DNA of 52,350 bases, the filler included, from Bipalium vagum (Eukaryota): the NCBI GenBank assembly GCA_037834085.1. It is 3 parts of 3 records of this genome, joined end to end, with 100 filler letters (N's around TTAATTAATTAA, not from the genome) between each part and the next. Parts side by side here need not be neighbours in the genome. Positions count along the whole stretch, not along the records: positions 16,930 to 34,001 come from JBBMKC010079832.1; 2 more parts are not named here. One strand, written 5' to 3'. Both the position numbers and the translations under genes were made by a program. Below are positions 19,101-33,768 of the stretch, one piece after another. The notes below the pieces were generated by a model, which worked only from the letters and a program-made list of their open reading frames with translations, had not been told where the DNA came from and searched no databases. Within the stretch, counting starts at the first letter, position 1. The number at the start of each line of letters is the position of its first letter.

Positions 19101-19780
19101 ATAGGTGAAGAACGAACTAAAGTTCCAGTATTTAATGGAAATCCAGTAGATTTCCCAGAATTCACATCCGAATACTATCTCACAATGAAAGCATTTGGGA
19201 AGACGGATGAGCAGATGGTGACACGATTACCACTGTCCCTTAAAGGACAAGTGGAGGCTTTCCACGGTGAAATCCTGGCTAAACATTTGGCTGATTACGA
19301 AGATGCAGTAGCCCTTCAACAGCTGAGTGAAGGTCCGAATGCAGTGGTACAGCCATACAAACTAATAACCTTTAAAGAGATAATAATGGAATTAGAATTA
19401 AAAGTTCTCACAGATATGAGCAGATTATTAAGAAATAAATTCTATGAGCGCAAACAGCGTCATAATGAACGTGTAGTAGAATACACGTATCAATTAAATT
19501 TATTGGCCGAGAGAGCCTTCGGACCAAAAGCAAATTGGCCCGCAACTACGACAGTGATCGTAAAGGATCAATGGTGGTCAGGATTAAGCTCAGCCATTAG
19601 ATCTCAATTAGTATTATTTGGTACAGAACCAATGGACCAACTGGCACATAAGGCCACTATAGTTGAAGCAAGCCTAGAAACAAAACCAGTTTTAACTACT
19701 ACGGTAAGTCATAAAAAGACATGCAGTAATTGCAACTGAATAGGGCATTCTGCTAGAACTTGTCTTTTCAAATCCAGAAA
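19101..19780 (+). mobile_element. Gypsy-type gag pseudogene with CCHC knuckle
   Basis: GEERTKVPVFNGNPVDFPEFTSEYYLTMKAFG...RLPLSLKG; MHR-like RKQRHNERVVEYTYQL; CSNCN*IGHSARTC with one in-frame stop; start codon appears as ATA; no pol seen downstream. Confidence 0.85.
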
Positions 19781-20467
19781 TAATAATAATAATAGTAGCA
19801 ATAATAATAATAATAGCAGTAATAATAATAATGATCAAAATAAGTATAATAATAATTATGAAAGTAATCTTCAGAAAAGACATTCTGCAAGAAACAGTGA
19901 AAAAGCAAACGCAGAGGTATGTTCCGAGTCGTCTATCAGACCATTTTTTAGGCTGGTTCTAGGGGTTCCCTAACTCGACAGGACTCATCAAAAAATCCTG
20001 TTGTAACGTATTCCTGATAGGGTAAAATACTTACAAATTAAAGGATTGAAGTAAATCTTTTGACACGTAATTTGTTGCCGTAGAGAACGGAGATCTTCGA
20101 AAAATTTGATTTTTTTGGAATTGAATATTGATTATCGTGGCAATTGGTATCTTCTGATTTTTTTTTCTCCTTAATGTCAATCTTGTTCTTTTCTCTATTT
20201 TTTCTATGAATTTTTGAAGGAAATTCTTGCCTTATATACAGTAGTAGAGGTTTACCGACAACCGTCAATCGCTACTTTTGGAAGGCTATTTCCTTCAATA
20301 GCCTTATATTTCAAAATTATTTTTCTATTGTCTTGACGACTAGATAAATCGTTATTTTAGTCATTATCAAGTTATTCTTATTAATACTTATTTAACTTGT
20401 TATTTAAAAGTACTTTATAATTAATTTTATTAATAGTAATATTATTATAATAATTATTATTATAGAC

Positions 20468-22050
20468 CAGGTGTCAGCAACCTACAGCCAACGAAAGGTT
20501 TTGACAAGCCTATGAAGATACTTGGCTGACCCGTGACCGCTTGTTAAATAACGAAAATATTTTTAAAAAACAAAACTTGTTCAAATACAATATTTAAATT
20601 AACCCATAAATTCAAAGATTAGGAAAGTTGATGGTTAATGTACAATTTTTCAGGATTCTTAAACGATTAATTATTTAAATATCGAGTGAAATTGTTGCTG
20701 TGAATAAAGTGACAAATATCAGGCTCCATTACATGACCAACCATTTTTAAAATTTTAAAAAAGTTAATGGAGAATCAAGGAGAAAGATGAAGTCAGGAAG
20801 TTGAAATCAAAGTTTGAAAATCAGACATCATTTATTATGAAGAAAAGAAGTGAATATGAATCTAATAACCGTACACTCTATGAAATGTCAAAACATCTCT
20901 GAAAAAGATAAAAACGTTTACGGATGGTGAATTTATTAAACAATATTTAATGACAGTGATGAATATTGTTTTGTCAGAAAAAAAGTTATTATATTCTTCC
21001 ATAAGTCTATCTGGTAGGACAGTCACAAGAAGAGCTATCATCAGATGTTAAAAATTGTTTATTGAACTCCTGCAACGAATATTGCAATATTTTTCAATTA
21101 AAGTTTTTGAGACTACATACTTAAATGATACCACTCAGCTTGCAGTATTCCTGCGAGGAGTGAATTCGAGTTTACAAATTTTTGAAGAATTTTCAGTTAA
21201 TTCATTTGAAGGATACAGTTACTAGAGCAGATATCTTTGAAGTAGTGATTAATATGAAAAAAAATTGTATTTAGATGTCACAACTGATGAAGCACCTGTA
21301 ATGGCAGGAAATAAGAAAGGCTTTGTTGCACTATTACAGACCACGTGGAAAACCTTGGAAAAGAACAGAAGCTGGTCAAAATTCATTGTATTATTCATCA
21401 AGAAGCCTTATTCACCAAATCTTTGAAAATGAAGAAAGTTGTTAACCTGATCCTATTTCGTGGATTAAATCATCGTCAATTTAGACTATTTTTGGTGGAC
21501 AGAGGCTGACTATGGAGACCTAGTCTATTTCTTCATTGGCTAAGCAGAGGTTCAATGCTCTAAAGAATATTAAAATTACATAATGAAATTGTCATTTTTC
21601 TTCAAATAAAATCTGTGGGTGCATCATATTTTCGCGATTCTAATTAGGTTTCATCTTTGGCGTTTCTTGTGAGCATTACCAGTCATTTAAATAACTTGAT
21701 TTTACACTTGAAGGGTAAAGCTCAGGTTATAAACGATATGTTTGGTCATATTCTTGCATTTGTTAGTAAACTACACCTATGGGAATACCAGCTTCAACAA
21801 GAAAATTATTCACATTTTCTATCCCTTCAGGAATGCAAACCACAAAATCCAGAAATATCTGTGAATATGAATATCTGAAGAATGAATTTTCATCTCGTTT
21901 ACTGACTTTCTATTGCAAGATGAATATGTTTCAGAATATATAAGTATAAGTATCAGAATGCTTTCAAATTGAGTTGATTAAATGCAATGTGAAAACGTAT
22001 TGAAATTAAAATTTCACTATACATATAAGCCCTACTTCGAATTATCACCT
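20468..22050 (+). mobile_element. hAT-Charlie (GTF2IRD2/SPIN-like) transposon, decayed and 3'-truncated
   Basis: 5' TIR CAGGTGTCAGCAACC; motifs FTDGEFIKQ, ISLSGRTVTRR, DTTQLAVFLRGVN, TTDEAPVMAG, IHCIIHQEAL, WLSRG, LAFLVSITSHLNNL...KLHLWE; frameshifts. Confidence 0.9.
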
Positions 22051-22526: not shown

Positions 22527-25500
22527 TTACAAATTCTTCATCCTTTTGATATATTTTCCCGTTTTATTGGTCAGGAAGGTGTTTAAAGGCAAAACAGCAA
22601 CTCCGTAAATACTCAAAAACCCGATATCCAGTTCCGTGGTATTTAAGTTATCTGTCAAAATGCAGAAATGACGAAATTTTTTCTGAAGAAAATATTGCTG
22701 ATTGAGAACGTGATCCTGTTGATTTGCGATATCTTCATCGCCGGCCGTTTGTATTTCAACGAGATTCATCGAATCGTCTTTGCTGTATTTTGTTGAATAT
22801 TCTACGAGAATTGATTGGATAGCGTTCAGATTTTCCATCTCAGCTTCGTTTGAGCACGAAGATCTTTGGAAATACAAATCTTTTATTTTATTGAAATATT
22901 TTGAATTTTTAAAAAATCAATATATTAATTAACAATAATACTTATACAAATAAAAAATATTTAAAATTATTAATAATAGTAATCACTATATATTGATTAC
23001 AGATTTTAATTAACAGATTTGAAGATCTCTCAATAATTAATTTATGATTTAAAATTCAATTTATTCAAATATAATTTTTAGTACCGTAAATACTCGAATA
23101 TAAGTCGAGGTTTTTTTCTATACAATTTGATGAAAAAATGGGGTCGACTTATATAAGAGTCATAGCAGTTTTAACCAATGAAATGGCTGTATTTATGCAA
23201 TGTATCACGTTGTGTTCATAATTGAATACTGGTTATCATTTATGTTTCGTTTACGAGACCAATGGACATCGTGGATGTCCAGTGGACAAGCGCAGACCAC
23301 CAAAGCTTAAAACCTGAAACGACCAGACCTCTTGACAGTCACTGGGTGGACCAAAACAGCCTGGGATAAGATAAACGCCCCACTCATCTCATACAGCTTC
23401 AAGAAGACCGGGATATCAAACAAGATGGACGGAACTGAAGACTACATGACACCACCGCTGCCGAAGATTATGACGAATCGGATGATGACTTCTATTCAGA
23501 CCATATGACTAATGAGCAGACATATTTTTGCCTCGACTTATACACGAGGTTGACTTATATTCTAGTATCTATGGTACTTACCAAAATGAAATAAGGCGAG
23601 ACAGTTGGAAATTAAATATTATTGATTATTATTATTATATTTTATCATTGATAAAATATTCTTGATCGTCCACTTTTAAAATAATAATAGAGAATAATTA
23701 ATAAGCAGTTTTCATCAAACGCTAAACTCCTCTCTTTTTCCCTCACAAAAATACTCACCAAATCAATTATATCAACAATCTCTCCACTGATCGACAAAAA
23801 AACCACTTACACGAGATTAGAGAAATATCTGTAAACACTGCATGGAATCTTCAAACACCAAATCCGATTGGAGTTCTGTCGTTCATTGATCATAAATTCG
23901 AGCATATTTCGAATGTTCTCGGCATGAGTGCTGGTCAGTGCATGGTGATCGAGAAATATACAAGACCGACTGTGCGGGAAAATCGGCTGGCACGAAAACC
24001 GAGAAACGCTTTCCACATCTATATAGGACAGGAAATGGACACTGGAATTGTTTTTCAATAGCAGCAACGAAATCGGACTGGTCGATTGGACAGTATCAGG
24101 CCGTTGGGTCGATGAGTCGGGAAATCGCCAATCCTGATGAACCAGAACATGGAGATCTTTGCCGGCTTGTTTGTAATTAGTCGTGTCGTAAACACGAGCG
24201 TTGTTCTTTTGCAAGAACGACTAGAACGACAAAAAACAATATTTCCTCTTTAACGATTTCAATGCCAATGGGAAAAATAAAAATAAAACCTTCACCAAAT
24301 GAGCCATGGAGCTACCTTTGTCATGTGAATCGACAACGAACACTTTTCGACCCGTCCAACTTTGATTATCGTCTAAGTAAGAAAAATAATTGACTATAAT
24401 ACACTGTCAAGTTAATCAATAAAAACTACCATCCAAAAACGGAGTAGCCGGAGTAGGTATTGGAGCTAACGTTATGGCTTCTGGTGGAGGAACAAGCCAC
24501 TGTAACTATTGGAAAAAAATTATTTTCCAAACCAATTAAAATTATCCATGTTTTTTAAATGGATCAAACAAAAAAATCTATTAAATCTTTGAGAAATTGA
24601 TGATAATTTAAAAAAATAACACTACCACAAAAATCGTTTTTTATTAAAATGGAAAAAAACAGTAGTGTGCTAAAATCAATGACAAGTGAATAAAATAACA
24701 AAATTTTTCATCTTACCCGACTAACTTCCGCCTTTTCTTTTTTGATTACTTTTTTCCCAACCGGTTGCGATTTATTAATGGTCATTTCGTCGTCAGAAGA
24801 TGACAGCAATCCTTCCGATTCCGTATCTGCTGCTGGCACAGTTTCCTGGATTGATTGTTTTTTTGTCGACCGTCTATTACTGCTACTACTAGTAGTGGCA
24901 CCACTTCTCTGTGACAATCGTGTATCAGAAGAAGTTGACGTTTTCGAATCCAATTTCATTTCTTTAGATTTTGTATTATGATGATGGTGATTGTGGTGCA
25001 AAAGAGATTTTTGATCGATTTCTGAAGACACGTGGTTGGCTTTCAATTCGTGGTCTTCTATTTGAGCTTTGATTATCAATTCAGCCATACCACATTCGTC
25101 ATATACGTTAGTATTGTTTTGATTAGACGTGCAGCTGTCTTGGGATTTTTTGTCTTCCCTACAGCAAGAATTGCTGACAGTTCCCGAGCATTCTCGATTC
25201 TTTTCCACATCTCGTTTATAGGACAACATCATAGCACGCAATCTAGTGCGTTCTGGACTTGATTGACCATCACTAGATTTACTGACAGCGTGCGACCGGC
25301 GTGCCACAACGTTGTGGGTTGAAATTGGTGGAACTGCTGGAATAGTCTTCCTGTTCATCATCATGCTCATTTCAATGGACTGGTCGAACGGTGTTGGAGA
25401 CGGTGACTGTTCATTGTCAATGATGTTGCTGGTGGTTTTGTACCGTTGCTGGTCACCACAGATGATGGGCACAGATGATAGCTTTCTACTGCGAATAATG

Positions 25501-27905
25501 AAATCCCGTTCTAAAACATTGATTTTCGATTGAATATTGCAGAAAATCTCTTTTGACACTTCCTGGGCATTTTGCGATGTCATTTTTGGAAATTTCTCTC
25601 CACTCCACGAATTCATTACAGATTGAACGAAATCATCCCAATCTTTCCCGTCTCTCTGGCTAGGAGAAGATTCGATTGCTTCTTTGATGGAATCGTGAAA
25701 TTTCCGCAACATCGCTTTACATATTTCTCCTTTGTCTAAAAAATTAACAGAAATGGTTTCCGATGATTTCGGTATCGTCTCAATTTGATTTTTATCTTTA
25801 TCATCGATTTTTGATCCAACTGATACAGCCATCTGTTCCTGTTTTATATTTGCATCGTCAATCGATTTTTGATTATCCGATTCATCAACCAAGGAACCTG
25901 TAAACGGTTTATCCAATTTCTCATTTACCACAGTCTCATCAACAAAAGTTGAACAGAACCCAGGTGTTTTCATTTGCTGCTGATAATATAAAGTTAAAAT
26001 GTCCTCATCGGTCAATGGAGCAAATCGACTTTGTCTTTTTTTTCTCGTTCTAGATTTTCCTGTTTCGGCTTTTTCATCATTATCCTCTTTTTTTTCATTG
26101 TTTAAGTCTATGGTTTTGGATTGATTAATTGAAAACTCATCATTTTTCTCTTCCCATACATCAACTAATTGAAAATTTTCCAGATCCAAAATATCCATAT
26201 CCCCAGCTCCCAGTTCCATGTCTTCAGGAACAATTGATTTCTGGATCCCTGAATGTCCCACATCAATCGACGATTGTTCCATTGAATCATCATTGATATT
26301 CATTTCTTCATTTTTCAAACACGAATTTCGTCCGTCTACCTTTCCGTGTTCCACAAATCGATCCCAATTCCAAAATTCATTCTGAATATCATCGCCATTC
26401 ATCATTAAATATTCCATGGCGATTTCTTGATCACAACAGTTCAACACGGCTCCTTCGCCCGATTTGTTCTGGGACCTACATGCTTCTGTTAAACCTTTAA
26501 TGTACTCATCAGTTTTACATGGATCAGTCTGTACATTTTTATAATAATGGACAATCACATCCTCGAGAACTTGATAAGCCGAATCCCAATTCAAACTCGA
26601 GTCTCTCATGAGCACCTTTCTGATGTCATCACCTCGCTGAAAACTGACACCCAATTCTTTATTTGCATACTTTTGTAACTCTTTCTTCATCTTTCTCAAC
26701 ATCGATTTCAATTTTTTCGGCATTGCAGGAATAAATTTTGGATTCTTTGAACAGCGCAAATGTCGTATTTTACCTTGAATAGATTTAAACTTAAAGATCA
26801 AAGAAAGAGAAATTTTCCCAATAAATACTCGTTTTTCTGTCTTATACATGTTTAGACAATTTTTTAATTTATTAATCGATCATAAAATCGACATGTTAAC
26901 AGTGATCTGTTTATTAATAAATTTTCTTAAAAATAAATACTCAAAGTTTATGTTTAATAAAATAATTAATAATTGATTTTTATAATAATTTCTTAAAAAT
27001 TAATAATAGTAAATATTACCGAAAATTACATAATAATTATACAATTCTAACGACCTTTATTTTTTAAAAAATCTTATAAGACTTAAATTGCTTCACACAA
27101 TTCAGATTTTTATTATTTGATAAATATTATAAATGTAAATATGAATATAATTAAAGGCAAGGAAAAAACGATTTAAATTCATAAAATAAGCAAAATTTAA
27201 ATTAAAAATTATAATTTTGGGAAAATAGATATATACTTAAAACAAAATTTATGAAAATAATCTTTTTAAATTAATAAAATAACTATAATAGAAAGACTTC
27301 AATTAGAAAATACCTCGACGAGATTCATTGAAACAAATGTCTCGAATTGCTTTACATCGCACACTAATCAATCTCAACTTTAGATTATCCATCAATGAAT
27401 GATCGCGGTATAGTTCTTTATATACACGACTTATCAAATAAATTGAATTCAAGTGTTTCTTTAAAGACAGATTGTTACGAACACTAAAGTTATATAATTC
27501 ACCTAAAAATTGTTAATTTAAAAACTATAAAGATAGGATCTCACCCAACTTGATTTTCTTAGAATTTTCAATGGATTTTATACATATTATTTGCTTTTTA
27601 AAAATGGAATTCAAACTTTTCTCCAATTCATTTATTACTTTAGGCACTGGCTCATTTGGTATTATATCTGAAATAATTAAAAATATAACTATTTAAAATA
27701 AGCTTACATTTTTCAACAGCATCATTTTGCAATTTTATTAACGAAGATTTTAGTTTTGATAAAATTCGGTCACCATAGTCTGGTATGTATATATCACTTA
27801 TATCTTCCAATTATAAATAATCTTATAAAAGTATTAAAATAAATTACTTGAACGATTCTTGAAAATATCAAAATGCAATATTAAGCTTTTATTTTCAGAA
27901 CTCAT
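22527..27905 (-). CDS. TASOR/FAM208A-like protein (C-terminal DomII + PIN-like domain), ~1142 aa, 9 exons
   Basis: Exons 27905-27848, 27803-27708, 27667-27545, 27502-27314, 26773-24717, 24505-24430, 24372-24290, 24220-23811, 22863-22527. All are GT-AG and phase-consistent, totalling 3429 nt. C-terminus RKVFVVDSHDKGSSMAHLVKSFLQKNN...LHVLVHQD...ISLLLLKNNSSVHFLSYIDVESV...IFLDHHAL...ENIRNMLEFM...IWCLKIPCSVYRYF...FRHFCILTDN...YGVAVLPLNTFL is collinear with recalled TASOR (KFYI...EIKEYL...LLIIIQNED...IPGLVTLKKLPCVSFAGVDSLDDV...IVSDESIL...ENLKNFLTFL...WQWKVHCKFQKKL...QRHIVFLTEK...NGIVVATAEDFM). Gene model is high confidence; family assignment moderate to high. Confidence 0.72.
23084..23574 (+). mobile_element. 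Internally deleted pogo/Tc2-like element (491 bp) in the last intron of the TASOR-like gene
   Basis: TA duplication on both sides; 24 bp TIRs CCGTAAATACTCGAATATAAGTCG / CCATAGATACTAGAATATAAGTCA; internal NLKRPDLLTVTGWTKTAWDKINAPLISYSFKKTGISNKMDGTED, the pogo transposase C-terminal motif. Confidence 0.9.
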
Positions 27906-28230: not shown

Positions 28231-31200
28231 ATTACCTAAGAAGTGGGCTTCGTTTGCAAAATGCTTTAAGCCCATCACGTTTCTTTCAAATTACTATACT
28301 GCAAACTTTAATTTTAAATTCCCAAGAAAAATGCCCTGTTTCATTAACAAATTCTAAAGACTACATGAGATACAATGCCGTCAATATGTTTGGAGCAACC
28401 CCTGTAATTTACATATAATGATGAAAATATATAATTATAAGTACTTTAATGAAGTCTAGATTTAAATATACCAAAGAATATGTTAAAGCACATTTTTCCA
28501 CAAAAATATTTTGAAAGTGAAATTTTTTCATTTGTAGAAAAAAAAATTTTTCAAAAACATGATTATTTAAGTTATTTTGAATAAAAGATTGTAAGACAAT
28601 GAAATAGGTTTTATTAACATTTACAGTTATATTAGGCATTTCAGTAAGCAGTTTACTGCAACATACTTAAAATTAATAACTTGTATTCATGCCTTTATTT
28701 TTTATTACCTCTTGATCCTTCTTGCCAGGCTTTCATACACACTTTATTTGAGAAACTGGAATCATTGTCTACTAGACCTCTGACATTCCCCAAAGTGTCT
28801 TAATATTGGTTGGTCTTCAACAAGCAATCTAGGCTTTCAGATCAGCCACAAAGACTCAATTATATTTAGATCTTGTGACTGAGCCGGCCAATTACTGAGA
28901 ACACATAATTTTGACTTGTCCAAGAATGATGATACCAATCTTGCTTTATGACATAGGGCTCCGTCCTGCTGAAATATATCTTGTGACTCATATAATAGCA
29001 ATAACCATTTCTTTATTAAATCCTGATAGACAAAAGAATCCATGCGATAGGGACACATTATAAGAATTCTGGTGTCATCTTCTTTTATAGCACTCAAACT
29101 ATTAAACTCTTACCTCCGAATTTCATAGTGGAATATATCTGAATCCTTACGGTTTGCGAACGTATTTTCTTCTTCTGAAGAACAGTTCTAACCTACATTC
29201 GTCAGTAAAAATGACCACATTCAAAAAAGAAGGAAGTAATTTCTAATAGTCTTTGCACGACTTTAAGCGATTCTTTGTGTGTTGCTCATTTAATAGTGAT
29301 TTCTTCGCTACAATCTGTCCAAACAAGTCATTTTTCTTAATATTACTTTTAACAGTACTTATGGAAGAGGTTTGACTTGCTTCCCAATCAGACAAAAGTT
29401 TTGGGGAATAACGAATAAACAATCTTTAAGATCTCTGTGTATTTTTTTGGCTTACAACAACTTTTACATATATTTTCCAATTTTTTTTTAAACTTGAGTT
29501 GAATACGTTGCACTGAATGCCGTGAAATATTAAGCAGTGAAATATTTTCAATAACTAACCATATTTAACCAAAATATTTCTAAAGTAGAAAAATATATTA
29601 GGCAAAAATGAGTAAAATATCATAAATATAGCTTTTATTTATTAAATTATTGAAACTTGAAAATAGTTTATACATTTTAATTATTTACAAATTTTAAAAA
29701 ACGGATTTTATAATAAATTTAATTTTCACAATTATAAACCACTCAATATTAATAATTTTTTTAGCGACTTATAAAGCTAACATCAAAATATATATAAATT
29801 AAAAAAGTTCTAATCATAAAACTTTAATATAATTTGTAATCTACATTTATATGCATTTTTACAGGGTGCCTCCAAACATACGTACGTTCTTTTCTTTTGG
29901 TCTTGATCCCATCCTGAACTGGAATTTAATTTTCCTGATCGATAATATCTTGCTACATGCCAAATTTTCTGAAAATTAAAAAAATTCTTTGCTCTTTGTT
30001 CATGTCGCTCCAATTCCATACTTCTATTCATACTACTGTCCATTTTTCATTTTTCTGATTGTACAAATTATCGATAGTATTCCTTAAATATTCATTTCTG
30101 TCTTCTAGGATTTTTTCTCAAACTCACCCAGATCCTCACAATCTACTAACCATAATGATCTTCTCAATTTGTATCAATCCTATAAAAATTGATCCTCTAC
30201 TATCTTCTTAATTGTCTTCGTCCATTGATTCTTTATTCCGAAAGTGCTAATAAATCAATTTGATGTGTATTTCCATACATGCTAATATGCTCTTTGTTTT
30301 CTTTGATAAAACATCTGTCTATCTACTCTACATATATTTCCTGGGATTAACTTTTTAGTTAAATCTTACTATTTTTGCTCAACTATTATTAGCCAACTTA
30401 ATATCATAATACACTTGGAGTCATTCCACTCAAATGAATTATCCTCTCATCATTTTAGTCTCATTACATTCTAATGCTTCTGCAGCCTGCCTATATTTCG
30501 AAATAAAATCTGCAAATTCTAATGGGTTTCCACTAAATGTCATAATCGGTAACTTCACTATCTCATAATCAATTCTTGCAACTTCCTTAACTTTCTCTGT
30601 AATATTTTCTGATTCTACTTCTTGATTAAGCTCTTCAATATCTTCTTCCTTTTCCTCATATAAACTTTTAAGTATCTTCGTTAATCTTCTTGTTAGTAAT
30701 CCTTGTAAATCTACATTTGATTTCCTCTCATTTGCTAGACTACTTTTCTTAACACTTACTGGTTCTCACTAAAAAATATTCACACTAAAAACAGACCTTT
30801 ATACAATTCCGGCTTTATTAAAAAGTTCCCAAAAAGAGTTTAAACAAACAATTCAATGCCACACATGACGACCTAAGTATTGGTGAAAGCGATTGATTGT
30901 TTCATTTCTTTTTTATTTTAACATTTTTCTTGATTTTTTCTTCAAAATAACTTTTGCCTTGATTTACATAATTTACAATTTTTATTAAAAAGGAAATTTA
31001 GTTACCGATTTTATTTATTCATTAGTGGTGTTTATTGATTAATATTTCAGATTATTGTATTTGAAATTCTTAACAATTGATCATCATTTTCGTTATTTAT
31101 ATATTTTTTAATTAAATTTTTAAAAATCATTTTGATGAAATCATTTCCTTCATTTGTCATTGGTCAAGGAAAACCCATATTATACAACTCGTGACATTGT

Positions 31201-33409: not shown

Positions 33410-33768
33410 TTTTAGTTTGTATTGGAAAATATATACAGTGATTCGACGAATGTTGAACTCTTTTTCAAAAATATAATATAATTATAATAACGGATAATGT
33501 CTCATTCCATAAGACAATGGATGTAAAAAGGTGGTTAAATGAATCAGGACATGAGCAAGTCTTGCTACCTCCGTATTCACCTTTTATCAATCAAATAGAG
33601 GAAGTATTCGATAAGTTGAAGGTTGTTGTTGTAGCTTCAGATCATCCTAACAATCGGATTTATTTGATAACCTCTATTACAAAATCCATAACTAATATTA
33701 GTCCAGTTGAAATCAACAATTACATAAAACATTATCGTAGTTTATTCAACTCTTCTTGGATCGGCTAG
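33410..33768 (+). mobile_element. IS630-Tc1 (DDE_3) transposase C-terminal remnant
   Basis: IIITDNVSFHKTMDVKRWL...LLPPYSPFINQIEEVFDKLK. Confidence 0.85.

Follow-up and report, generated by a model that had tools for sequence, protein, structure and literature searches.

The window considered here, a stretch of 52,350 nucleotides (filler included) from the genome of Bipalium vagum (GenBank assembly GCA_037834085.1), carries on its minus strand, from position 27905 down to 22527, what looks like a real and intact protein-coding gene of nine exons. That reading is based on the open frame, the splice sites, the contrast in G+C content between exons and introns, estimates of chance and the existence of two relatives. 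The predicted product would end in a probable, degenerate PIN-like domain whose closest known look-alike, at sub-threshold level only, is the PIN domain of the TASOR/Chp1 type. There is about an even chance that the protein is best described as an orphan PIN-like protein of a small lineage-restricted family, with its kinship to TASOR unproven. An earlier note on this DNA had gone further, describing the locus as an invertebrate TASOR-like gene and a candidate scaffold of a transposon-silencing system resembling the human silencing hub (HUSH), a complex known chiefly from work on vertebrates.

The chain of nine exons was built by reading the DNA and looking up splice motifs, and its frame and length were then tested by script. 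The exons sum to 3429 nt, equivalent to 1142 codons plus a TAA stop, with zero internal stops; all eight introns run from GT to AG and the phases are compatible throughout. G+C content lies between 0.24 and 0.49 in the exons as against 0.14 to 0.31 in the introns, in AT-rich surroundings (~20-39% G+C in 1-kb windows around the locus). Three long open frames are found on the minus strand, at 26849-24708 (713 amino acids), 24214-23807 (135 amino acids) and 22877-22527 (116 amino acids). With stop codons occurring locally at 0.079 per codon, the probability that a frame would stay open by chance is 2.6e-25 for exon 5, 1.3e-5 for exon 8, 9.6e-5 for exon 9 and 5e-3 for exon 4, whose 63 codons lie without a stop in DNA of ~30% G+C; exons 1, 2, 6 and 7 are too short for chance to be excluded singly (P 0.07-0.2). 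Exon 1 is tentative, as its phase fits that of exon 2 but the acceptor of exon 2 (..TTGGAAG, directly before the exon) is weak, its own chance probability is 0.2 and it is covered by no homologue. The support for exon 1 and for the links from exon 5 through exon 6 to exon 7 comes solely from splice signals, phase and G+C contrast. Intron sizes at the 5' end are 40-44 nt (three micro-introns of 14-21% G+C, that upstream of exon 2 having 44 nt and 14% G+C), and the downstream introns measure 57-947 nt. This pattern, micro-introns in 27314-27905 as against longer introns in 22864-27313, might help to place the organism. Among the sequencing runs holding the locus there was no RNA run; the single holder yielded DNA-like contigs, with a depth of ~24, which span the introns and show zero differences from the window.

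Two relatives bear on the gene model. The 713-amino-acid frame had a single match, P0001 (707 amino acids; E 9e-73), which is 31% identical over 95% of the query and is encoded on a genomic contig, L001, of 56% G+C overall and 65% in the exon, compared with 39% in exon 5 here; the richness of the contig in G+C places P0001 in a distant species. The similarity begins upstream of the first methionine of both proteins, right after an acceptor AG that is followed in both species by GT.. coding KIRHLRCSKNPK, and it ends exactly at the donor after ..SR, again in both species. As both boundaries of exon 5 are conserved in L001, coding exons must flank it on either side. L001 carries no equivalents of exons 1-4. 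At 350-1011 of that contig, upstream of the conserved exon, there are short repetitive frames (GYWKVLMDIG-like units) with the look of an intronic tandem repeat. The second relative, P0002 (249 amino acids, a UniParc record without a name), was reached when exon 8 was searched with phmmer against 1.84 billion representatives (E 3.6e-65, 79% identity). It opens with the last residues of exon 7 and is then collinear through exons 8 and 9, gapless at the junction, and so supports, if only at the level of a close relative's gene model, the joins between these three exons. The second match of the same search, the repeat protein P0003, was taken as spurious, and no TASOR-like protein was reached among those representatives. 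Protein searches with exon 8 and with P0002 gave nothing beyond the queries themselves, and a metagenome scan gave no relative. Feature searches of the ESM Atlas scored at best 0.79, against transposase-associated clusters of plants, a level of noise, and yielded no usable match for P0002. With only two relatives among the billions of proteins searched, the family appears to be small, unnamed and lineage-restricted, and it is fast-evolving.

The intact nine-exon frame of about 1142 amino acids reported in the earlier note is thus confirmed by the script (3429 nt, GT-AG introns), with outside support from the two relatives for exon 5 and for the end of exon 7 through exon 9, and the five motif strings quoted there from the window were all found, LLLLKNNSSVHF, ENIRNMLEFM and WCLKIPC in exon 8 and RHFCILTD and GVAVLPLNTF in exon 9. 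It could be argued that the locus is not a functional gene, but a set of open frames that happen to line up, or else a pseudogene in decay that is not expressed, since exons 1, 2, 6 and 7 are each compatible with chance and the gene is known here from DNA alone. Such an explanation has to account, however, for an open exon of 685 codons, for exon boundaries and sequence blocks that are conserved in a species whose corresponding exon differs so widely in G+C content, and for exons 8 and 9 being 79% identical to the protein of a second species with the frame undisrupted, and it is very improbable.

Exon 5 supplies most of the middle of the predicted protein. Its N-terminal helices are followed by a long acidic, serine-rich and low-complexity region, and 66% of its residues are disorder-promoting. 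Comparison with P0001 reveals some eleven short blocks that are at least 50% identical, among them a basic patch (RKKR.SRFAPLT), DILD.ENFQLVDVWE, SPSPTPFDQSIE, SPER.RLRAMMLSYKRDVEK, DECGMAELI and DT.SEGL.SSSD. Few short motifs in the disordered region are as well conserved as the block SPSPTPFDQSIE, which coincides (~25350-25410, minus strand) with a faint match to the Pfam PHF12 MRG-binding family (E 0.17), which is probably due to chance. An AlphaFold2 (AF2) model of exon 5, made with P0001 as the second of two alignment rows, contained helices only, and its mean predicted local distance difference test score (pLDDT) of 38, mostly below 50, is too poor for assigning a fold. A long disordered central linker is one of the features by which TASOR is recognised, and it is present here, but the feature is not specific to TASOR.

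The case for a link with TASOR depends on the C-terminal part. Pfam scans were carried out exon by exon and on slices, some 25 pieces in total, with E values of up to 10. The whole of exon 8 had PIN_TASOR (PF24630) as its sole match, at E 0.04 and 14 bits, residues 85-129 aligning with profile positions 2-44 of 141, and a 60-residue cut (23813-23992) gave the same profile positions at E 0.008 and 16.4 bits. Since the match spans ENIRNMLEFM and WCLKIPC, that portion of the alignment which the earlier note had proposed for the TASOR tail is consistent with the family profile. The match starts at profile position 2 and leaves ~120 residues to the C-terminus, about what is needed to complete a domain of 141 positions. 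The best score is nevertheless well short of the gathering score of 27 bits and only the first 43 of the 141 positions are covered. Exon 9 had zero Pfam matches, whole or in four sub-pieces; P0002, in which the whole domain lies in one chain, had no match to PIN_TASOR; and the supposed DomII, residues 1-86 of exon 8 (23963-24220), had no match either. Accidental matches on other pieces fell at E 0.03-0.17 (OrsD 0.033, PIP49_N 0.072, SCVP 0.092, BRCT 0.14, together with CRM1_C and PHF12_MRG_bd) and, as about 25 pieces were scanned, the best E value of 0.008 is only some five-fold better than chance. The match must accordingly be regarded as suggestive, not significant.

The PIN-like fold is a three-layer alpha/beta/alpha arrangement in which strands (s) and helices (h) follow in the order s1, h1-2, s2, h3-4, s3, h5, s4, h6, s5. 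Across the superfamily acidic residues are found after strands 1 and 4, and a glutamate is usual after strand 2. Several strings in exons 8 and 9 read as what we take to be PIN-type motifs, namely a strand followed by aspartate (FLD), a strand IP..V, a strand followed by threonine and aspartate (ILTD.L) and, last of all, a GVAVL strand. Strand 2 is not followed by the usual glutamate, and the domain is therefore probably a degenerate, non-catalytic binding module. The AF2 model of P0002, for which two exons of the window were added to make three alignment rows, had a pLDDT of 40 and a predicted template-modelling score of 0.41, with a pLDDT of ~30 over the supposed DomII region; from residue 87 onwards it runs strand, two helices, strand, two helices, strand, helix, strand, helix, which is the PIN order. 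Taken together, the motifs and the order of strands and helices, the latter from a model with a pLDDT of 40, suggest that the C-terminal end is probably a degenerate PIN-like domain.

Searches of known structures did little to settle the matter. Foldseek, run with the P0002 model against the PDB, returned nothing with E <=0.001, the list being led by amino-acid kinases with the PIN domain of SMG6 (2dok) at rank 25, and VIA-align wide returned generic alpha/beta folds only. Throughout these searches amino-acid kinases and AAA ATPases matched as weakly as PIN chains did and, because the fold models are poor (pLDDT 38-40), the results are uninformative, neither for nor against a PIN fold. Sequence searches of the PDB with exon 8, P0002 and profile A1 gave no match or matches at chance level (SMC6, ApoA-IV), and that with exon 9 gave none. 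The same weak fold matches, and a Pfam match that is both partial and below threshold with chance matches of comparable E value elsewhere in the protein, could be expected if the C-terminal module were an unrelated alpha/beta domain, belonging to another PIN branch (SMG5/6, SWT1) or to a non-PIN, Rossmann-like fold, and had met PIN_TASOR by chance. SMG5 and SMG6 (EST1A) do resemble the present protein in being large and in having the PIN domain at their C-terminal end, but an N-terminal domain of the EST1/14-3-3-like kind is lacking here, and the PIN families of those proteins had no match in the Pfam scans. This explanation is rather improbable, since no other Pfam family, PIN or otherwise, matches exons 8-9 even at E 10, the set of motifs and the strand-helix order fit PIN, and the position of the match at the start of the profile is coherent with the remaining length.

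If the domain is PIN-like, the question becomes whether it descends from that of TASOR. The protein could truly belong, though very divergent, to the lineage of TASOR/TASOR2 (Chp1-like). Exons 6-9 would in that case be homologous to DomII-PIN. The N-terminal domains would either have disappeared, in the way that the main isoform of TASOR2 has lost its pseudo-PARP, or have changed in exons 1-5 so far that they can no longer be recognised, and the protein would work in a pathway of RNA-linked H3K9 methylation that is directed against transposons. No Pfam family matches better than PIN_TASOR, zero other PIN families match, and the genome is rich in transposons. A long disordered linker leads up to the match, which lies close to the C-terminus, as in TASOR (PMC7619638), and TASOR-like proteins are known from invertebrates (PMC10578480). 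Human TASOR (FAM208A) likewise passes from a long disordered linker into a C-terminal alpha/beta module (DomII-PIN, 1233-1466), and in the present protein the start of the PIN-like domain has PIN_TASOR as its only Pfam match. Human TASOR differs in its length of 1670 amino acids, as against 1142 here, and in its DUF3715, SPOC and DomI domains, which are undetected in the present protein. In TASOR2 (FAM208B) the main isoform has no pseudo-PARP, and a very long disordered centre precedes DomII/PIN (PMC7619638); on a comparison of domain descriptions only, it differs from the present protein in having kept SPOC and DomI, both undetectable here. The SPOC-DomII-PIN arrangement is shared with fission-yeast Chp1 (bioRxiv 10.1101/2020.03.09.974832) and must therefore be ancient. 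Schizosaccharomyces pombe Chp1, a component of RITS, the complex for RNA-induced transcriptional silencing (SPOC-DomII-PIN, PDB 3TIX), offers a further likeness in bearing a degenerate, non-catalytic PIN domain at the C-terminus of a chromatin-silencing scaffold, from which it follows that the module is older than the vertebrates. Chp1 differs in possessing a chromodomain and a SPOC domain, and it was absent both from the PDB sequence searches and from the fold-search matches listed.

Several observations weigh against kinship with TASOR. The score of 14-16 bits over less than a third of the profile was not extended by exon 9 or by P0002, it exceeds chance so little that accidental matches come close to it, and the phmmer search of exon 8 reached no TASOR-like protein. 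The DUF3715 pseudo-PARP (PF12509) had no Pfam match in any exon or exon-5 slice, and SPOC and DomI gave no Pfam signal in any single exon, exons 1-4 (19-63 codons each) having been scanned singly; it is precisely by these domains, DUF3715-SPOC-DomI, that the TASOR-like proteins so far described from invertebrates have been defined (PMC10578480). True homology with the DomII-PIN of TASOR/Chp1 is possible but doubtful. Of the DomII-PIN tail proposed in the earlier note, then, what stands is the sole match of PIN_TASOR at the two exon 8 motifs, and what does not is any statistically secure or complete correspondence. The proposal of a HUSH-like scaffold goes beyond the evidence altogether. DUF3715, SPOC, DomI and the central linker are all required for TASOR to function in HUSH silencing, SPOC/DomI providing the contact with MPP8 and DUF3715 being dispensable for assembly, whilst DomII/PIN (1233-1466) is dispensable for repression of a reporter (bioRxiv 10.1101/2020.03.09.974832; PMC7619638). 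Because the TASOR domains that do this job are undetectable, a scaffold role is unsupported and not justified, its probability lying well below that of the homology itself, and, as far as HUSH is concerned, the protein does not count as a TASOR orthologue. TASOR binds Periphilin by way of a helix in its central linker; the genes for such partners do not lie in the piece analysed. No paper connecting TASOR with flatworms was found in the literature.

The orphan PIN-like protein that is the preferred reading would consist of three parts. The N-terminus, to which exons 1-4 and the first part of exon 5 contribute, would be short, structured and mostly helical; the middle would be a disordered region of ~550 residues, acidic and rich in serine and lysine, with short conserved motifs and a basic patch (RKKR..SRFAPLT) resembling a nuclear localisation signal; and the C-terminus would be an alpha/beta module of ~300 residues from exons 6-9, the last ~160 of them in PIN order. 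Such a protein may act as a nuclear adaptor, partners being held on the disordered region whilst the PIN-like end binds protein or RNA.

The surroundings of the gene are populated by mobile elements (Table 1). Intron 8 contains an element of ~500 bp with 27-nt terminal inverted repeats whose arms are 89% complementary. Contig depth over it rises to ~18,000, compared with ~24 for the flanking gene, and the contigs have many variant joints and small indels; it is from this depth that a very high-copy element resembling a miniature inverted-repeat transposable element is deduced. Outside the gene, the decayed transposase remnants match DDE_3 (E 4e-6 and 1.4e-5) and HTH_Tnp_Tc3_2 (E 3.6e-6), each narrowly missing its family cut-off. 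A 184-amino-acid open frame at 19185-19739 on the plus strand has, by eye, the appearance of a retroelement gag-like fragment, with no Pfam match, and an AAT microsatellite lies next to it at 19775-19856. Short frames in differing phases at 21055-21943, also on the plus strand, look by eye like a frame-shifted hAT-type transposase remnant, three pieces of which had no Pfam match. Between 29430 and 30930 there is a GC skew of -0.3 to -0.4 over ~1.5 kb, with no long open frame.

Table 1. Features of the gene and its neighbourhood, in positions of the window.
Feature	Position	Strand	Description
Exon 1 (tentative)	27848..27905	-	ATG at 27905; 19 codons + 1 nt; donor GTAATT
Exon 2	27708..27803	-	phase 1; donor GTAAGC; within open frame 27652-27810
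Exon 3	27545..27667	-	phase 1; acceptor ..TTATTTCAG; donor GTGAGA; located in open frame 27525-27647
Exon 4	27314..27502	-	phase 1; acceptor ..ATTTTTAG; donor GTATTT
Exon 5	24717..26773	-	2057 nt; 686 codons counting the shared first one; from open reading frame
Exon 6 (inferred)	24430..24505	-	phase 0; 49% G+C vs 21-23% in introns; no homologue covering it
Exon 7 (inferred)	24290..24372	-	phase 1; weak donor GTTTTA; last residues ..VK match start of P0002
Exon 8	23811..24220	-	~85-residue unassigned alpha/beta region (the supposed DomII), then ~50 residues of putative PIN-like start (..FLD.., ..LKIPC..)
Exon 9	22527..22863	-	phase 2; TAA at 22529-22527; rest of putative PIN-like domain (..FCILTDNL.., ..YGVAVL..)
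Candidate poly(A) signal ATTAAA	22499..22504	-	~25 nt past the stop; putative, from reading of the DNA
High-copy terminal inverted repeat element inside intron 8	core 23080..23578, within 22961-23708		outside the coding sequence
Decayed Tc1/mariner-type transposase remnants	28840-29422; 33517-33765	-; +	Pfam

The present result is the more modest one of a well-supported gene model, an unnamed, fast-evolving family and a probable degenerate PIN-like end. A larger interpretation, by which the DomII-PIN of TASOR/Chp1 would sit in an invertebrate on a protein of its own, lacking pseudo-PARP, SPOC and DomI, and this protein would mark a HUSH-related, RNA-linked silencing pathway, is unlikely. If it were true, the C-terminal module of the HUSH and RITS scaffolds would exist outside the vertebrates as a stand-alone unit, and the gene would mark HUSH-related, RNA-linked chromatin silencing in a transposon-rich animal genome. 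An invertebrate protein consisting of the tail only would, if confirmed, be a simpler system in which to ask what the conserved DomII-PIN of TASOR does, and would bear on how the scaffolds of HUSH and RITS were assembled in evolution.

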